64,000 bases of DNA from Eutreptiella sp. 'Long Island Sound 2002' (lineage: Eukaryota; Protista; Euglenida). The stretch lies in assembly GCA_964036045.1 (NCBI GenBank), contig OZ038379.1, positions 3,906,001-3,970,000 of the forward strand. The letters run 5' to 3'. A model generated the notes under the pieces. It saw only the letters and a program-made list of their open reading frames with translations. It searched no databases and was not told where the DNA came from. The position numbers and the translations under genes were made by a program. Positions 43,939 to 54,281 of the stretch are shown one piece after another (position 1 is the stretch's first letter; the number at the start of each line of letters is the position of its first letter).

Positions 43939-45969
43939 CTAATATGGCAGACCGGTGACGGGTGCGCCATAGGCCCCGGTGACGGGTGCGCCATAGGCCC
44001 CGGTGACGGGTGCGCCATAGGCCATAGGGGCGGCAGCGGTCACAGGGCCGCCGTATGCCATTGGGGCGGCGGTGACCGGAGCTGCGCCATAGGCGACAGG
44101 GGCGGCGGCAACAGGGGCAGCGGCAAACTGCTGGCCCTGCACGTACTGAGTGGGCAAGGTGGTGGGGGCACCACGGCCGTGGACAACCTGCTTAGAGACG
44201 ACCTGGCGGGTCACGTGCTCTGTGCGAGGCACAGGGACGGGCACCTGCACGACCTTCTCAACGACCTTCTCAACGATCTGCTCAACAGGCACGGGAACCT
44301 CGACGTGCTTGACGATCTCGACAGGCACCTGGACGGTCTCGACGACTGGGACAGGCACGTCGACGGGGACCTGCACGATCTTCTCCACAACCTTGTCGAC
44401 GACGACCTGGACTGGGCGGTCCACAATCTTCTCAACAGGCACAGGGACCTGGACGGGGGTTGGGACTGGGACCTGAACAGGGGTTGGGACTGGCACTGGG
44501 CGCTCCACGATCTTCTCAACGATCTGCTCCACAGGGTAAGGCACGTCGCGGGTGACGACCTTCTCCACAGGGACAGGGACCTGCACTGGGACCTTCTGGT
44601 ACTGGATCTGAGGAACGTGAACCACCTTCTCCACAATCTGCTCCACTGGGTATGGGACAGCCTTGTGGATGATACGCTCCACAGGGACGGGCACGCGACG
44701 CTCCACGATGACCTCCTGAGGAACTGGAACCTGAACAACTTCAGGGACGGTGACCTGGCGAGGCACCTGCACGACCTTCTCCACAATCTGCTCCACAGGG
44801 TAAGGCACGTCGCGGTTCACAATGACCTCGTGTGGGACGGGAACCTGAACGGTCTTCACCACCTCCTGGGGGACTGGGACGTCACGGGTCACGACGACCT
44901 CATGAGGGACAGGCACCTCAACGCGCTCAGGGACGACAACTTCATAGGGGACCTGCACCTGGCGCTCAACCACCTTCTGGACAGGGTAGGGGACCTGGCG
45001 CTGGACGACCTTCTCGACAGGGTAAGGCACCTGGCGCTGGACGACCTTCTCCACAGGGTATGGCACCTGAACGTGCTGAGGCACCTGGACGGGCACGTCA
45101 ACGGGGACCTGGCGGACGACCTCACGGGGCACATCGACGGTGACCTGGCGGATGACCTCCTTCATGACGGTGTAAGGCTCATGGCGGACAACCTCCTTCA
45201 TGACAGGGTGTGGCACTGGAACCTGCTCCACGACCTTCTTGGGGACAGGGACAGGAACCTCCACAGCCTGCTCAACGATCTGCTCCACGGGGACAGGGAC
45301 ACGCTTCTCAACGATCTGCTCCACAGGGTATGGCACCTGACGGTGCTGGATACGCTCAACTGGAACAGGAACCTCAACACGCTGAGGGACGGTCACCTGA
45401 CGTGGGACCGGAACACGTCGCTGCACAACACGCTCCACTGGCACAGGGACGGCGCGCTGCACAACCTTCTCGACAGGGACCACAAACTCACGCTCGATCA
45501 ACTCGATCTCGCGCTTGCGCTCCACGGGAACGTACTCAACGTGTCCGACGGCCTCCTTGCCGATCACACGCTGGCCAGCAAACTGAGCATCACCGCGAAG
45601 GACAGATGCGCCCACACCAGTGGCGTACCCAGCGGCGTAACCAGTGGCGCCAGCGGTGTAACCGGCGCCAGCGGTGTAACCAGTGGCGGGGTAGGCGGTG
45701 GCCAAGGACCCAGCCGAGTAGGCACCAGCGGCACCAGGGTAGGCACCAGCCGCAGCAGTCACTGGGTATGGGGAGGTGGTAGCAGCGCCAACGGTGGGAG
45801 CACCCACTGGGTACGCGGCACTAACGCCCTGAGAAAAAGGAAAAGGTAGTTGGTAGGGTGCTATGTCGTACAATCTCGCAGATCGAAATGCGATTTCGGA
45901 TGCATTTAGTAGTGATCAGATGCCAGGACAGGTGCATACCGTAGCAGGGAAAGAAGTTGGGTAGGACAT
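43939..45969 (-). CDS. Articulin (euglenid pellicle/epiplasm protein), complement(join(43939..45828,45940..45969)), 639 aa
   Basis: Exon 1 encodes MSYPTSFPAT, followed by a 111-nt GTATGC...ttttctcAG intron in phase 0. The central domain is ~12-aa VPVPVE(Q/K)IVE(K/R) repeats. The termini are Ala/Gly/Tyr/Pro-rich, ending in (Y)GAPVTGA repeats as in Euglena articulins. Confidence 0.92.
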
Positions 45970-46433
45970 GTTCGTTGCTGTAACAATAATGCAAATGCAA
46001 CGAAAGCGCGCTGGAACAGCAATAATTCGCACAATGCTATCTGATGCAATTCGTTACGCTGTGAAAAATAACAACGCACGTTGAAAATATCTTAATTGTA
46101 TTGTAAAATACATAGTGGGACTATGCAGATCAAAATTTTCCTTTGTTGAAGCCTGTGTTGACCATCGCTCTCGTCACCATGAGGAATGTCGCGGATGTGA
46201 AGGTTTCCGCAGCGCGATTCATCGCGGCCATGGCAAACGGGTTTTTAAGCCCCACAGCAAAGCCTGTATGGGAATGATTTACCTGACATCTTGCATCATG
46301 TAGCATAGTTCGGTACTTTTAGTACATTTTTTCCACGGCAGAGCCTGCAGTTAATGGTTTAACGACACTTGACCATTGGGTGTTTAGCATTTAGGCTGCG
46401 TACGTTCAGGTCGTTTTGTCCGGACCGTATGAC
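45970..46433. promoter_or_regulatory. 464-bp divergent (head-to-head) intergenic region
   Basis: It lies between the articulin ATG (45969, minus) and the Tes-like ATG (46434, plus). It is AT-rich yet keeps CpG and is free of the repeats that fill other intergenic DNA. Candidate acceptors occur on both strands (45978-45979 minus, 46408-46409 plus). Confidence 0.6.
45978..45979 (-). promoter_or_regulatory. Candidate trans-splice acceptor for articulin
   Basis: Minus strand reads ...gcatttgcattattgttacAG|caacgaacATG, leaving an 8-nt UTR. Confidence 0.5.
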
Positions 46434-49400
46434 ATGAGCCACGAGGAGCCGGATATTGTTTATGAGACATTTGCATTATGCCCTTATTGTACCTTTGCAC
46501 AAGGAAAGCCTCCAAAGTGGATGGTGGCGAAGGTAAGCCGTGCCGTGGACGGTTCCCACAGTTGAGCTTTCAAGTTTATCACGTCGGTTGCGCTTTACGT
46601 TCCCAAGGTACATACCTAAGGGTGGGTAGTTAAATTGATTTTCACTAAGTTACCAACACGTTTCGCGACCCCTTCTTTCAGGTGTTAGTTGAGAACGCAC
46701 GAGTTTATGTACAAACCGAGTGCCCGCACCACGGGAGAAGGAGAACATTGTATGCCAACAACGCTGAGTTCTTCAAAAGATCACTTCGCTTTGACCCACA
46801 ATTCACTTCCGGCGAAAACACTCCAAAATCTCCCACCGTTGGCGGCCTCCCAAAGAACATGGATAAATCGGGGAGTGATAGAGTTAGTAAGTATGACACC
46901 TTCGATGATGGCGAAAATTGGGCGCTTGAACGGTCCCGTTGTATTTGAAATCTCGGAACCATCCTTGGTGCATCGATCCTCTTTGTCCCTAGAATTGCAG
47001 ACATTGAAGAATTGGTGGGCAAAATGCAGTTTCATTCGGATGATGATCCCCTACCTTTGATTTGTTCGATAGATTTATTTCAACTAGGGGCGTATGTGGA
47101 TGACAACGTTGTCTTGGAGAAAGTGCACTCCTATGTTGCACATTATCAACACCAACAAGGGAGCAATTTCTTTTTAAAGGTGTGAATGCGACAAAACGAT
47201 CACAAAACCAAAGGGCTTGAACAATCGCGACTCGAGTCGTTTGATGGTTTCCTCACTCGATGGTACGCCACGTGGACGATACGTTCCTAAATCTCTTTTC
47301 CACATTTGCTATTGCAGCTGACGGCCATGCTTTCACCCAATACTTCCGTATTGAACGCAAAAATACGGCTAGTTTTATCCCAAGTCCCTCCGAATTGTAT
47401 GGTGTTGGTAGAAAGCAGCACAGATAGATTGGTGGCTCTTGTGAATCACCCGGAGTCCGTGTTGCTAAATTCAAAAGTGTTTCCTATTGTCAAGATGTAC
47501 GTGAAAGCCGGAAACGAAGAGGACGCAGAAGATGAGTTGTTGCGATATTGTAAAGGTTTGTTCATGGAGCAAGGTTTGGGATCGTGATGTTTGTGCTTCG
47601 GTGTCTCCTGCAACCCGCATGAGACGAGGGTGGGTCGCATAGCTATTATAGTCATTACCTCATCCTTTGGGAGGGTTTGGGGGTGCGGAACGAGGGGGGG
47701 GGGGGGGGCGCTCAATACTCCTCCACCGAATGACCATCCACCTTCACGAGGAAGGACACGGAGGTGGGCTACTAAAGGTGGGAACAGCGGGATTGAAAGG
47801 CGCGGTGAGTTGGGTGGGCTGATGTGTTGTGCTCCGGGTTTGGGAGGAATATTCACGGCGGTAGGGTGGGTAGCAATATGGCACCTTTATTTCGCGTGGC
47901 TATATTCCCTAGCATGTGCACCTTGTTATCAATTCCGCCGCTATCCCGCTCATTATTCCCATGCTGGGTCGCACAAAGTGGACCTCGCCTTGTCGTACGC
48001 AACCATTATCCGTTGCCCATTTCCCAGGCTTGACAAATATCAATGAGATTAGCACGGTTGTGAATCTCTTTATATCACCACCGCTCCCGAATTTGGCGAG
48101 ACTACTAACCATCGTGCGACAAAGACCAGGTATTCATGTTTGTAATGTGGCTAGGGGTGATACATGTGCACCCGATGATACCAGCGAGCGGAGGGGAGAG
48201 TTGGCAACAACTTGGGCTTGTTAGGTCTAGATTGAGAATGCCACGTGGTATATCCATGTAAAATGCAACCGGAATTCTCCCCTTGCCCCCTCTACGGGTT
48301 GAGAGCCCTTGCCCACATGGATTTGTCCCCTCCCTCTACGGGTTGAGGCGTACAATCTAGGCTAGTCGGGGTGACCCGTCGAGACTCTTGTTTGTAATCT
48401 GTGAGCGAGAATAGCGAGAATACCCAAGGCGGCCCTCAACCTATAGCCATGGTTCAAAAGGGCAAGACGGCACACTGGTATGTATCCGAGGATCTAGCTT
48501 TTGAGACTCCTAAATGGCCCTGCCAAGTTCGGGTTTCGGCGCAAACTTCGACACGAGCAACCGATGTTGCCGGCTAGAGGGGTCACCAAGACGAGGGGCC
48601 CCCCATGCTTTATTGCAGGCATTATTCGTGTCCTCGTTCTCAATCAAGAGCAGCCAACCAATTCGTTGATTCAACTCATTTCTGGGAGCTCCAAATCTCA
48701 AGAATCAAGACAACCCATGGATGGCTTTGAATTGCTCTCCAAGTTGGAAGAGGATACCAATGGCTTTCTCTCTGCACACGATTTCGTTCCGGCGAGGTGC
48801 GGCCTTGCCCCAATACATACATACATACATACGTGCATACGTACGTACATGCATAGTTGTGATGTGCCATGGGCCGCACAAGACAATCAAGTTGGTTTCA
48901 TGAGCCCAACAACGTAAGTCTACGTTACAATACGTTACAATTCATTTCCCTTCTGTTTGGCCCCCTATTGCGTCTTTTCCCCCGGTGAGCCCAAAGCCCA
49001 AGGGGTGGTGCTGGTATTTTTGTTGTGCTCTATTTTGCATGAATACAAATCTACACACATTTGGTATAGATAACACGATTTCACAGTGTGGGCAGCCAGT
49101 AGGAGTTCAACAAGTTTCCATGCACTTCCGCATTTTCAAGGGTGTCCATGTTGGCCATTTTGTTTGTCTCTAGTGTTCGTTTCTTTCTTGTTCGCATCGC
49201 AAGGACATCCTTTTTCTTCATCCCAAGCCGCTTGACCCTCCTACTGTGCAGACATGGTGCATGCCAAAGTAGATAGATTCCCTCAACTGCCCTCCCGCTT
49301 GGCTTTGAGAATACTATCCGAGTTGGACACAGTGCAACACGAGGGCATCGTTTGGACCTGTCTCCGCAATAACGAGCCTTGGTGTGCGCCTTCTATGCGT

Positions 49401-52400
49401 TGCAACTGTTGGGGAGTTGCTACATGGTGCGCAGCGTGCAAAGTTGCTCGTGGTGCATCGGGCCCCCAAGACTTACAATTTTGGATGCAAGTCATTGGGC
49501 TGAGTGGTGTGGTGTTAGTGTGAATTGTGGTTTCTGGTTATTGTTTCCCATTGTTTGCCTCGCACATAGTAGCGGGGAGTGTCAAAATGGCCTCATGAAG
49601 TTTCGAGGTCCCCAAGGCCGCAGGAACCACAAAAACGGGCTGTGTAATCCCTGCCAATTGTGGTTCCAATGCGGGGTGGAGCTTGCAAGATATAACATGT
49701 GCTGAAGTGGGTCTGCAAAGCATGTCCCAACAATGGTTGCATGACCCCGACCCTCCCCCTGCATCAGTGTTGTTTGATTCGTTGTCGTTTTCGTCGTTAT
49801 TGGCACCGGTCTTTTTTCCTGCTTGTGTCCCACAGTCTTTTGGTCCAGCGGTAACTCCGCTTTGTGGGAGCTTTGTGGGACGCGCTTAGCATAGTAAAAC
49901 TCGCTTCTCCGCCCAAGACACGAGTGGGATGTCTCTTCTAGGACCCCCTTTGAAGCCCCTTGACTTCTACTGCATCTTTGCTCCCGCTTGACCACCGTGG
50001 CAATGGCGGGCACCTAAAGTCCCCTAGGTGTGGTCCATCTCTAGTTTCTGCTCACCCATGTCCGGATCACAGTGTTTGTGCCCTGTTGGAGCCCTTCATC
50101 GAGCTGCTCGGATTTGGCAGATTTAGCATCCGTCCTTCGCCGCTTTGTGGGCATTTAACATGCTTCGTCAATTCGGAGAAGTACACAAGCACTCCTCTCA
50201 GGTTATTGCATCGTCGCCCTCTGTGCTGTCACCCCGGGCCTGTGTTTGAAGGGGGTTATTGTCAGTTCCCCCCTCCACACCCCATTGCCCTCCAACCATT
50301 TTGCAATCGTCAGCATGGCCACAGGGACCGCTTTGGCGCGCTCTTGAAACCTCTTTTCAGGCTCCCTCCCGCTCAAGCGCAGCAAATGGGCGCCTCATCT
50401 TGTGGATTGGTGTCCTGCCATGTCGCAGTCGTCTTATGATGAAGTGCACCGCACCAACCCCTCCACAATTCCCAAACCACTCAAAACAAGCGTCATGAAG
50501 CATGTGCCCTGCTTTTGGGACCCAAAAGAAAAACAGACACACCCCTTGGGTTTTTTTGAAACAGTCCCAGCACTCAGGGTGATGCGCAAGCGTGGGCCGC
50601 TTTGGAGGGTGATGCGCAAGCGTGGGCCGCTTTCGAACAATCCCACCAGACAAAGTCACGACTATGGTCAATGCGCAGAGCCCCCGTAATCAGAGGTTGC
50701 AATGGGTGCCTAGCGCAAGTTGTGTTTCCTCCAATGCAGGGTGCTCCAACTCGCTCCTCTTGAGGTAGCGCACGTGGTTCGTGGTGGTTCGTGGTGGTTC
50801 ATGGTGGTTCGTGGTGGTTCGTGGTGGTTCGTGGTGGTGCGTGGTGGTTCGTGGTGGTTCGTGGTGGTTCGTGGTGGTTTGTGGTGGTTCGTGGTCGTCC
50901 CTGTAGCCCAAAGGGTGACGTATGAGTGCTGGTCTCTTGGGGCGTGGCCTTGAACAATGGGAGTGCTTTCCCTGCAGCACCTGCGGTGCACCCTGCGGCG
51001 TGCCCTGCGGCGCACAGTTTGGGTAATTATACCAGAATCGAGGCGGAATAGTGCCGCATACATACCACATTTGTTACATACCGTTTACCCCCCCACACAC
51101 ACCACGTTTTTCTCCTGTTTGATTGTACATTCCCCTTTTTGGGCCTCTATCTTTCACAAACGGTGCATTTGATTCCGTATGATGTTGATCCGTGATGGGC
51201 ACTCTTTCATTCGAGGCCTTGGAGAGCATCTGTTTGCCCAATTGTACAATTGGGCTGTGTGCCGCGAGCCGTGCACCAAGTTGGGGATGAACGGGGAGGA
51301 GCGCATCCTATGACTCCATTGGATGGTCCATGCTGTGAACAGCATTTCATCAACAAGTGCAACGTCAAGTACAAGCCGTATGGTCCATGGGGTCCTTTTC
51401 TTGGACATTGTACACTAAAGCTAATTACCCTTTCCCTGTGGCGCCTGCGGCGCGCCGGAAGCATTCCCAATGGGTCAAGGGGGTGTTGGGGCATGGGGTG
51501 GGTGAGGGGGGGATTGGGTCAGGGGGGGGGGGGGGGACGTTGGATCATGGGGTTTGGTTTTATTCAGTTTGCTTGCAGCGCACGGTTCTGGCGGCATCAC
51601 CCTCCTCTGTTGGCATGCAGTATTCCACACACAAAGGTTGGTTGGGGTGGGGATCCTGGTCCCAGTCTACCAACACTTGGCTTCAACCCGTTCTTGGGGT
51701 TTGGTTAATGGCCCGCTGCAGCGCTGAATGCAGACCCTCTTGCATATGATCCCGGTGAACTGCCTAGTCCCCTGCCGGGGAGGACCCATGTAAGACCGCA
51801 CATAACACGACACACTCTTCGGTTTCACAGCCACTAACACTGGAGGCGGCATGGGTGCCAAAAGGATTGCTCCAGGCTGGGCTGCTGTCCAGCTTTCCAT
51901 CCGCCTATTGAACATTGCCTGGTATGTATCCAACTGCTTTGGATGCCACCAACCCCGTCAGAATTGAGACGCGCCGTCCTGCTGTTTTGCTCCACCGTTT
52001 GGTCAGGGATTTGTTCTGGCCAACCCGATGCTGCCAGAACCCCCACAACGCTTTGTCGCCACGACAAAGTGTCGGCACCGTCCCTCACACATGATCTCTA
52101 GCCAGCTTTGCCAGCAGGCCACCCTCAGCCGAAACCCCTTCACATTTTTTTCTGTTGCTCTTTGCAGTCGACTGGTGGACGTCGAAAAGTTGTACCAACG
52201 GATGCTGCCGCTCGTGGCTCAGATAAATGCAGACAAAAAGGGCATCACATTATCAATGGGCCAGAAGGTCAAGAGTGTGGTGCAATCCTGCTTGAAGCCT
52301 GGTGTGGAATTGCCGAGCAATCTCGTTTCACTACAGATCAAGGGAGGCCGTCCTGTGGCAGCATTCAATGACTCCGGAGTGTATGATGCCCAGTTCATTG

Positions 52401-52597
52401 TCATACACAGTCTCATGGATGTTGGTCTGGTAGACCTGAAGCGCAGGGCAAGATGCTGCATGTGCTCGTGCAATTTAGCCTCCACTCTCGACAGCAGTGA
52501 TGAAAACAGGAAACGGTGGGCAACGGCGAAGGCGTTCGGGTGCTCTGCAAACAGCAAAGTCCAGTTTGTCGCGGACTGCACTCTGGGGTGCGTGTGA
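46434..52597 (+). CDS. Tes/GDGT-MAS (MJ0619)-family radical-SAM-fold protein lacking the CxxxCxxC motif, join(46434..46532,46682..46886,47001..47179,47318..47555,48028..48129,48619..48796,50073..50201,52168..52597), 519 aa
   Basis: All seven introns are GT-AG with matching phases (0,1,0,1,1,2,2); 1560 nt = 520 codons with no internal stop. Colinear family motifs: ETFALCPYC, RVYVQTECPHHG, LEEDTNGFLSAHDFVP, PLCG, TPLSRLVDVE, HSLMDVGLVDLKRRARCC, ADCT. Family assignment is from recalled motifs. Confidence 0.82.
50774..50893. repeat. 10-bp-unit minisatellite (GTGGTGGTTC)n in intron 7 of the Tes-like gene
   Basis: About 12 units read directly. Confidence 0.92.
51357..51395 (+). pseudogene. Tiny remnant of the Harbinger-family transposase tail
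   Basis: caacgtcaagtacaagccgtatggtccatggg resembles caagaggcaagtacggtataagccttatggtccatggg at ~28208-28245 (RQV-YKPYGPW). Confidence 0.45.
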
Positions 52598-54281
52598 TGC
52601 AATGCAGTGACCAGACACCCACGACAAGCCCCTGCACATTCTCCCCATGGTCCAGGAGACGTCCGTCGTGTCTAGCTTCTCCATGCATGTGGACTGACAA
52701 TGACTAACCAGATAAAGCACAGCAATTGTCCCGGCTGTTCCAGCCTCATACAGCCGGGAGTGTCGGCACGAAGTCACTCCCCCGCCACCCACCCGCCAGC
52801 CCCCCTTTGTACCCCTGGTACCTCCCCCCTGCACCTCCCATGGCACTGGGGGGCGATTTCGTGCTGTATATCACAGCCGGTAGTCGGGTTTGCGGGAAAG
52901 GACACTCACGGTGCAGGCCAATTGCAAGGGGTTTCGGGGGGGTGCCCGATGCGTTCACCAGTGAAGCATTTTGGCACATGGCAGTCTTTGGGGCGCCGAC
53001 CCTATGGTCGTGGAGTCACACCTCACGGCCTGGGACATGCCGGCCAACAGCGTGGTTGAGCCAGAGATGCCATCAGCCCTCTGCACCGACAGGACGCAGT
53101 CGGGTGGCCTTTCAGCAGCTGCGCTGGGTGGACAGGGGCACAGCACAGCACAGTACAGCACTGCATGGCACGGCATGGCATGGCATGGCACGACACGGTG
53201 TTCACAGTGCAGTCGAAGGGGACCTGGGATGCGATTCTTCACCGGAGGCTCAACGTAGGGCGGGGGGAGGGGGGGGCAGGGCGGACGCTTGTGAGACACA
53301 GCGTCCAAACCATTGGTGGTCACTGCACACGACCAACCAGGGGGTGGACTCACACGAGTCCCTAGCTCCGAGGCGTGGACAGCCCGGAGTGAAGTCCTCA
53401 AACGGGGAGCCCCTCAGCAGCCCAGAAAGCAAAAGAGCAACAATGCACCACATTCACCCCAGAACAACCCCAACAAACACCAGTGACAGGTCAGTTTGTA
53501 GATTTGGAGACATGTGCAAAAGTGCCCGGTGCCCCTGGTACCACCCAACTGCAAGTGGGACAACCCGACAGCCACAAGGGGATGCAAGGAGCGACACGCT
53601 GCCCCCCCGGCGCCGCACACCAATAGCAATGAGCGTGCCAGCAGAAAAAGAAAGAGGCCAAAATTGGGAGGAACGCAAGCAGCAAAGCAAGTGGGCACAG
53701 GGCCGCCCCATACACGGCAGTGAGACGAGCCCCAACAGGACACACAACAATACACAAGGGAACCATGAGGTGCGAGCACTGCAGCAACCACCAAATGCGG
53801 CGCACGCCAAGAGAGCCATCAGCAAACACCCCCCCCCTCCCTCTACAAGGTGCCCACGTACTCCACAAGGGCGGGAACTGTGCCCCGCGCGCTGGGAGGT
53901 GCCCGCCACGGGGGTGGCAACAGGGCCGTGACCAGCCAACTGCGCACGGGACAGTCCACGTGGTACCGAGATGTGAAACCCTCGTACCGGGGGGCAGGCG
54001 GGTGGGACAGGAGGGGGTGCGCGAAAGGGGCACCCAGGAGCGCCAACAGACAGGGGGAGGAGCAACACAGATACACAGAACGCGGGAGCCACACCAGGAG
54101 GGACAAGGGCGAGCACAGCAAACAAGGAGGAGGGGCACAGCAAGGCAGGAGAGGCAACCAGAGCAGCGGGAACAAGGAACCAGAATGGAGCGGATGGCAG
54201 AGCGTGCGCATGGGAGGCAGCGACAATAAAGGGGATGGCTTGGCCAGCCAGCCCTGTCGCTACTGGGTGCCAGGGTTACCC

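Follow-up and report, generated by a model that had tools for sequence, protein, structure and literature searches.

A gene on the forward strand of a Eutreptiella contig encodes a relative of tetraether synthase in which the radical S-adenosylmethionine (SAM) cluster motif of that enzyme is absent. It lies at positions 46434-52597 of the window, by which we mean the whole 64,000-nucleotide stretch analyzed (Eutreptiella sp. 'Long Island Sound 2002', contig OZ038379.1, positions 3,906,001 to 3,970,000). Its product, the window protein, belongs to an unnamed, monophyletic family of cluster-less proteins resembling tetraether synthase (Tes or GDGT-MAS; reference protein MJ0619, Protein Data Bank entries 7TOL and 7TOM, NCBIfam NF045702). 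This family spans several eukaryotic supergroups and is not specific to euglenids. We consider it probable that the window protein is a eukaryote-wide family member derived from Tes and a non-radical lipid-binding metalloprotein on endomembranes, a function that we infer from the evidence below. A preliminary description of the locus had proposed a domesticated Tes homologue stripped of its radical-SAM cluster. That proposal is supported overall, and we correct it with respect to protein length, distribution and a suggested partner role.

The locus is an expressed, spliced nuclear gene. Three-frame translation and a splice-site scan of 46400-52700 on the forward strand confirmed the eight exons and seven phase-matched introns described earlier, with a terminal TGA as the sole stop codon. 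All introns run from GT to AG and measure 149, 102, 138, 472, 489, 1276 and 1966 nucleotides (nt). The final coding model of 1572 nt translates into 523 amino acids (aa) and has the following parts:

Exon 1, 46434..46532, forward strand: aa 1-33, start codon and first half of a rubredoxin-like zinc ribbon; placed by open reading frame (ORF), GT donor and RNA joint.
Exon 1 ligands, forward strand: C16 (46479-46481) and C19 (46488-46490), aligned with MJ0619 C9 and C12.
Exon 2, 46682..46890, forward strand: aa 34-103, remaining half of the zinc ribbon and then a linker free of Cys; RNA joint 46890|46993.
Exon 2 ligands, forward strand: C47 (46721-46723) and H50 (46730-46732).
Exon 3, 46993..47179, forward strand: aa 103-165, DIEEL, barrel strand beta-1 PLICSIDL and, at the place expected for CX3CX2C, the loop FQLGAYVDD without Cys; entered from exon 2 by an RNA contig.
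Exon 4, 47318..47555, forward strand: aa 166-245, degenerate SAM-binding strands; alignment of 16 eukaryotic and 30 Tes sequences.
Exon 5, 48028..48129, forward strand: aa 245-279, barrel strand and helix; RNA joint 48129|48619 and homology.
Exon 6, 48619..48796, forward strand: aa 279-338, last part of the barrel and beginning of the C-terminal domain (EEDTNG, DFVPA), corresponding to Tes profile positions ~288-340; RNA joints on both sides.
Exon 7, 50073..50201, forward strand: aa 338-381, containing EPFIELLGFGRFSIRPSPLCG, with C363 (50146-50148) equivalent to Tes C338; acceptor from an RNA contig of data set X2.
Exon 8, 52168..52597, forward strand: aa 381-523 and stop; RNA joint 50201|52168.
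C-terminal metal-site residues in exon 8, 52406..52579, forward strand, from the ligand map: H461 (52406-52408; Met439 of Tes), C477 (52454-52456; C455) and C518 (52577-52579; C470).

The seven junctions (J1-J7) put forward in the preliminary description could for the most part be tied to RNA. Contigs of public RNA runs were placed on 46420-52419; run X9 carries the same species label as the genome, and X1 and X2 are estuary metatranscriptomes matching with 0 mismatches. Contigs of X9 are spliced at J1 (46532|46682) and J2 (46890|46993), an X1 contig at J5 (48129|48619) and X2 contigs at J6 (48796|50073) and J7 (50201|52168), placing five of the seven junctions in spliced RNA from three data sets. 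J3 (47179|47318) and J4 (47555|48028) had no read support in the RNA contigs examined and are set by homology only. All seven are gap-free in alignments with orthologues derived from transcripts of Euglena gracilis (P0041), Entosiphon sulcatum (P0001) and Ploeotia vitrea (P0002). The earlier length of 519 aa fits an in-frame junction at 46886|47001, which is ruled out by the RNA contig spliced at 46890|46993; since RNA places J2 there, the product has 523 aa. An exon 7 beginning at 50028 (538 aa) was ruled out by the RNA contig with its acceptor at 50073. One X1 contig lies wholly inside intron 4 (47848-47998, 0 mismatches) and could represent unspliced pre-mRNA or DNA carried over into the library.

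Homology of the window family to Tes is solid. When single exons were compared with Pfam and NCBIfam, exon 2 was the sole scorer, matching PF23545 (Zn_ribbon_HMPTM, E 7.8e-5; 'HMPTM' is the old name of MJ0619) and NF045702 (Tes, E 1e-4, 21 bits); the other exons, being either too short or too diverged, yielded no scores. With exon 8 as the query, an exhaustive phmmer search over 1.84 billion representatives returned 34 proteins, and the full-length members match NF045702 alone among families (E 1e-6 to 1e-19). Scanned whole, family members reach 27-68 bits on NF045702 and stay below its curated cut-off of 450 bits, whereas five true Tes controls score 567-727 bits there and reach 85-102 bits on PF04055. 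Word-based searches with P0001 and with the 17-sequence family alignment A1 brought up no more than two or three proteins, as the list of candidates was flooded with low-complexity words. For comparison at the profile level, 36 true Tes loci were fetched from archaeal and bacterial genomes via the back-translated motif HFMDxYNFDV. A hidden Markov model (HMM) of 30 true Tes sequences matches the spliced window protein at E 1.2e-13 (Z set to 1e6), a 17-member family profile matches the GDGT-MAS chains of 7TOL and 7TOM at E 9.4e-13, and hhalign pairs the eukaryotic and Tes alignments at 99.85% (E 1.4e-29) across 449 columns that take in the central barrel. Profile searches thus recover the MJ0619/Tes family and bear out the earlier claim of homology. 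Within the eukaryotic family, the window protein can be aligned over its entire length with P0001 (E 3e-164) and nine more full-length members, and it matches ten other members at E 1e-48 to 1e-149.

The whole four-part Tes fold is kept, as judged on a model of the Ploeotia orthologue P0002. The AlphaFold2 model (pLDDT 81.8, pTM 0.83) matches GDGT-MAS in Foldseek, the structural comparison suggested in the preliminary description, with E 1.6e-19 against 7TOM. VIA-align superposes 418 residues over model positions 38-510 on 7TOM with Z 26.3 and a root-mean-square deviation of 3.9 Å, and the runners-up MoaA, viperin, SuiB and PqqE score Z 10-12. Tes clusters of the ESM-Atlas match the model at TM 0.74; a search of unnamed ESM-Atlas clusters gave nothing useful.

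The radical-SAM machinery and the N-terminal auxiliary cluster of Tes have no counterpart in the eukaryotic family. Sites were compared in a table of 16 eukaryotic and 30 Tes sequences, using the published Tes ligand numbering (PMC9433317), with the MJ0619 numbering reproduced by the Methanocaldococcus sequence L009. The radical-SAM motif CX3CX2C is absent from the window protein and from all 34 family hits of the exhaustive search, and every complete Tes carries two CX3CX2C motifs 25 residues apart. Tes C98, C102 and C105 align with window M114, I129 and F132 in both hhalign and MAFFT, and these positions are mostly hydrophobic in the eukaryotic family. The SAM-binding residues F106, G144-G145-E146, T172-N173-G174, R210, Q268, S271 and R275 are conserved in all or nearly all 30 Tes sequences (F106, GGE, N173, G174 and Q268 are invariant); the 16 eukaryotic rows show no such conservation. 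The window segment LKLTAMLS aligns with Tes QFSGGEPT, with GGEPT paired to TAMLS by hhalign, and LVESS aligns with VATNG. This agrees with the earlier reading that CxxxCxxC is missing after PLICSIDL and that GGEP and TNG are degenerate. The PF04055 profile had no match with E <=0.01 among 20 family members, and for the window exons there was none with E <=1. The N-terminal auxiliary cluster's ligands ([4Fe-4S]N; C73, C77, C80 and H83), present in 30/30 Tes sequences, are gapped or non-Cys in 16/16 eukaryotic sequences; as already described, the Cys-free linker of exon 2 stands where Tes has the [4Fe-4S]N segment. Because the CX3CX2C cluster and the SAM-contacting residues are lost, the window protein is predicted to be unable to generate a 5'-deoxyadenosyl radical or to couple lipid tails in the manner of Tes.

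The other two metal sites are retained at the level of their ligand residues. The rubredoxin-like ligands C9, C12, C33 and H36 of MJ0619 correspond to C16-x2-C19 and C47-x2-H50 of the window protein, the CxxC/CxxH pattern noted previously, and all four are found in 13 of the 16 eukaryotic rows; the exceptions P0014, P0016 and P0028 are N-terminally short or divergent. Tes C338, C455 and C470 are kept as window C363, C477 and C518, and C338 is invariant in both the eukaryotic family and Tes with the exception of one eukaryotic sequence. These three residues are the sole Tes-invariant cysteines after residue 300. We take them as the probable ligands of the C-terminal [4Fe-4S] cluster of MJ0619 because of this invariance and because they fit its reported coordination by '3Cys and 1Met' (PMC13459092). 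In GDGT-MAS the C-terminal cluster adjoins the lipid tunnel, and departure of its Met can open a coordination site (PMC9433317). Met439 and Tyr459 were found to be invariant across 1000 homologues (PMC9433317). Met439 is Met in 30/30 Tes sequences and His in 16/16 eukaryotic ones (window H461), and Tyr459, also invariant in 30/30 Tes sequences, is replaced by S, V, T, A, L or E in 16/16. The replacement of the labile Met439 by His speaks for a closed metal site with a structural role or a role in electron transfer, or for Zn. The preliminary expectation of one surviving Fe-S site and a surviving lipid-pocket domain fits these data, with C338, C455 and C470 kept; Fe-S at this position is putative, Zn being an alternative occupant of a Cys3His site.

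The C-terminal half is well conserved, in agreement with the first analysis: EEDTNG, DFVPA, RPSPLCG, PLSRLVDVE, MD...D..RR.RC and a C-terminal CT are conserved in the window protein, and the motif M-D-x4-D-x2-R-x2-R-C, preceded by x-x-x, is common to the window family and Tes. A1 contains 14 invariant columns. The family signature consists of DIEDL, RPSPxCG, Q..x.HNxMD....D..RRxRC (with His in place of Met439) and a C-terminal A.CT; the window protein carries it in full, with DIEEL at 106-110, RPSPLCG at 358-364, HSLMDVGLVDLKRRARC at 461-477 and ADCT at 516-519. Euglenids have an additional Cys-rich tail insert between C477 and C518 (window 52454-52594, aa 477-523; RCCMCSC ... AFGC ... DCTLGCV), which is present in Euglena gracilis, Entosiphon and the window protein and not in non-euglenid members. 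This insert might form an additional metal site.

The cluster-less family is distributed across distant eukaryotic lineages. Members were found in the following sources:

Euglenida: Euglena gracilis, Entosiphon, Ploeotia.
Heterolobosea: Percolomonas, Acrasis kona (found with a search restricted to the C-terminal domain of P0010), Heterolobosea sp. BB2.
Amoebozoa: Arcella intermedia.
Breviatea: Pygsuia biforma.
CRuMs: Diphylleia rotans, Mantamonas plastica.
Centrohelid: Pterocystis.

The 18 eukaryotic sequences together make up a single clade with 100/100 support in an LG+C20 tree, on a stem ~4.5 substitutions per site from the sampled Tes. Euglenids form a sub-clade (100/100) in which the window protein groups with E. 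gracilis at 51% identity; identities to other euglenids range from 42 to 51%. Two homologues are found in eukaryotic genomic contexts, adjoining WASH, U-box, Glyco_hydro_47 and RRM genes, and one further homologue neighbors a flagellar-protein gene on a contig of 3.4 kb. A recent horizontal transfer into euglenids, with an archaeon or bacterium as donor, or prokaryotic contamination, would be consistent with the closest named family being prokaryotic. Such an origin is nevertheless refuted by the tree and the introns and retains practically no probability: the gene has seven spliceosomal introns, the family forms one clade covering at least five supergroup-level lineages at a great distance from sampled Tes, and two homologues have eukaryotic neighbors. 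One clade across several supergroups means that recent transfer into euglenids is not the explanation, and the gene is not a euglenid peculiarity.

The older origin of the family can be outlined tentatively. The unrooted tree joins the eukaryotic branch to Tes next to two archaeal sequences (95/92), an attachment point that should not be trusted because of the branch length and biased sampling: the Tes set was biased by the fetching motif and left out Asgard sequences. A speculative and rather doubtful scenario is that the family is a vertical relic of the Tes of the archaeal host, present in the last eukaryotic common ancestor, disarmed, and reused as an endomembrane lipid-binding metalloprotein once archaeal lipids were abandoned. 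It is favored by the single eukaryotic clade and by members that fall to either side of most roots proposed for eukaryotes (Discoba; Amoebozoa, Breviatea and CRuMs; Haptista), and weakened by the very long stem, the motif-biased sampling and the missing Asgard sequences.

Domain fusions in other lineages point to endomembranes. An N-terminal FYVE finger (PF01363, E 1e-18) occurs in one lineage (P0035, P0043 and A0A7S2X683), and a GOLD_2 domain is inserted between the barrel and the C-terminal domain in P0044 / P0021 (loci L040 and L041), a GOLD_2-bearing member being seen in 31 RNA assemblies. FYVE and GOLD are domains of eukaryotic endomembrane and lipid-trafficking proteins, and FYVE binds phosphatidylinositol 3-phosphate. 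The window protein itself starts directly at the zinc ribbon and has no obvious targeting peptide. We propose that it acts as a non-radical metalloprotein in which the C-terminal Cys3His site, holding [4Fe-4S] or Zn, would now be coordinatively closed and the hydrophobic pocket domain may still bind a lipid tail. It would be a lipid binder, sensor or carrier that works on endomembranes from the cytosol, a location suggested because of the FYVE and GOLD domains of other lineages and the lack of a targeting peptide.

An alternative, suggested in the preliminary description, is a non-catalytic subunit or scaffold whose partner is an active radical-SAM paralogue within one cell. Pseudoenzymes often pair with active paralogues, and the fully kept fold would suit such a role, but every eukaryotic sequence found falls in the cluster-less clade. 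In addition, 0/34 hits of the exon 8 search contain CX3CX2C. Both are weak evidence as the searches were not designed for a canonical euglenid Tes. The partner role finds no support in these results and we regard it as improbable.

Several observations weigh against the interpretation of the window protein as a non-radical lipid-binding metalloprotein. The FYVE and GOLD fusions occur in lineages other than euglenids. The structure was modeled for P0002, which is 42% identical, rather than for the window protein; the C363/H461/C477/C518 site and the hydrophobic pocket are putative, and the [4Fe-4S]C cysteines of MJ0619 are assigned by their invariance. The barrel has gained new polar residues, with E241 and R299 invariant and R211 present in >=90% of rows (P0002 numbering), and these could form a new catalytic site rather than a dead one. 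The alternative that the protein is still an enzyme, performing new non-radical chemistry, for example of a Lewis-acid or redox type, on a lipid or another substrate at the C-terminal metal site or the barrel residues, gains from these residues, from the strongest conservation being located around the C-terminal metal ligands and from the retention of the family across very deep eukaryotic splits. On the other hand, the open site provided by the labile Met439 is replaced by a firm His ligand, and Pfam and NCBIfam recognize no known catalytic motif. We consider this alternative unlikely, though a contender to be reckoned with.

A variant contig may also weigh against this interpretation. In a DNA contig of X8 ('organism B', a related sample), nine substitutions relative to window positions 46420-46995 were found, seven of them exonic. 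In exons 1 and 2 these amount to five non-synonymous changes, including W29C in the zinc ribbon, and two synonymous ones. The contig also carries a 2-nt deletion at 46885-46886 beside the exon 2 donor and an 11-nt insertion in intron 2. It could represent a divergent allele, a paralogue or a decaying copy, and constraint may be weak on at least one copy elsewhere. Over exons 6 and 8, further X8 contigs show no difference from the window. Together with the loss of the catalytic residues, the mostly non-synonymous variant and its deletion are what could be expected if the gene were a decaying relic or pseudogene, functionless in this organism. We hold this to be very improbable in view of the intact 523-codon frame over eight exons, the spliced transcripts in three RNA data sets, the 42-51% identity to other euglenids and the family-wide invariant residues.

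Repetitive sequence occurs in introns of the locus and upstream of it. Intron 7 contains, outside the coding sequence, one tandem array detected by Tandem Repeats Finder:

10-bp tandem repeat GTGGTTCGTG, ~12 copies, 50774..50895, no strand assigned.

The region at ~50800-51600 of the same intron, in which this array sits, is of high copy number, with contig depth up to 1400 in X8 and abundance in the metatranscriptomes, and because of these values the segment is read as a high-copy repeat or mobile element that is probably transcribed. An ATAC-type microsatellite is located at 48813-48855, starting 17 nt past the exon 6 donor. Upstream of the gene, a long ORF at 43939-45873 on the reverse strand encodes a very repetitive protein rich in VPVPVE and VEKVV; the opposite strand is also open, which is typical of biased repeats.

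The cluster-less eukaryotic Tes-like family is apparently undescribed. The literature consulted, including a 2026 review of radical-SAM lipid enzymes, treats Tes as an enzyme of archaea and some bacteria. A eukaryotic Tes relative is not mentioned in the full-text literature searched, including Zeng 2022, Lloyd 2022, a preprint of 2025 about radical-SAM enzymes of archaeal lipids and the 2026 review, which agrees with the earlier statement that no description was known in euglenids. Family members are labeled 'uncharacterized' or 'hypothetical' in UniProt and NCBI. A conserved, expressed family with the Tes fold and two of the four metal sites but no radical-SAM machinery represents a natural dissection of an enzyme and reveals which parts of Tes stay useful without radical chemistry. 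The wide occurrence of the family among distant protists, together with the FYVE and GOLD fusions, points to a lipid-handling protein of the eukaryotic endomembrane system that has so far gone unstudied. Should descent from the archaeal host be shown, the family would offer a molecular means of tracing what became of archaeal lipid machinery in eukaryogenesis.

Among known systems, Tes/GDGT-MAS is the closest, with the same domain order and fold along the full length as judged on the P0002 model (Z 26.3). The rubredoxin-like C-x2-C...C-x2-H ligands as well as C338, C455 and C470 are common to Tes and the window family. In contrast, CX3CX2C, the SAM residues, [4Fe-4S]N, Met439 and Tyr459 of Tes are missing from the window family, which has His at position 439. 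Tes is found in prokaryotic hosts, whereas the window gene resides in a eukaryote and contains spliceosomal introns. The wider radical SAM superfamily (PF04055; MoaA, viperin, SuiB, PqqE) shares a partial TIM barrel with the central domain of the window family, which lacks the cluster and SAM motifs and the PF04055 match. The radical SAM (seleno)protein TrsS (NF045646) has a similar N-terminal zinc ribbon, to which its weak match is confined, and is itself a canonical radical-SAM protein. A precedent by name for a radical-SAM-derived 'pseudo' protein is the haloarchaeal 'pseudo-SAM/SPASM protein' TIGR04347, compared here by its NCBIfam name only; it is prokaryotic and belongs to the SPASM subfamily, and the window family differs from it in both respects.

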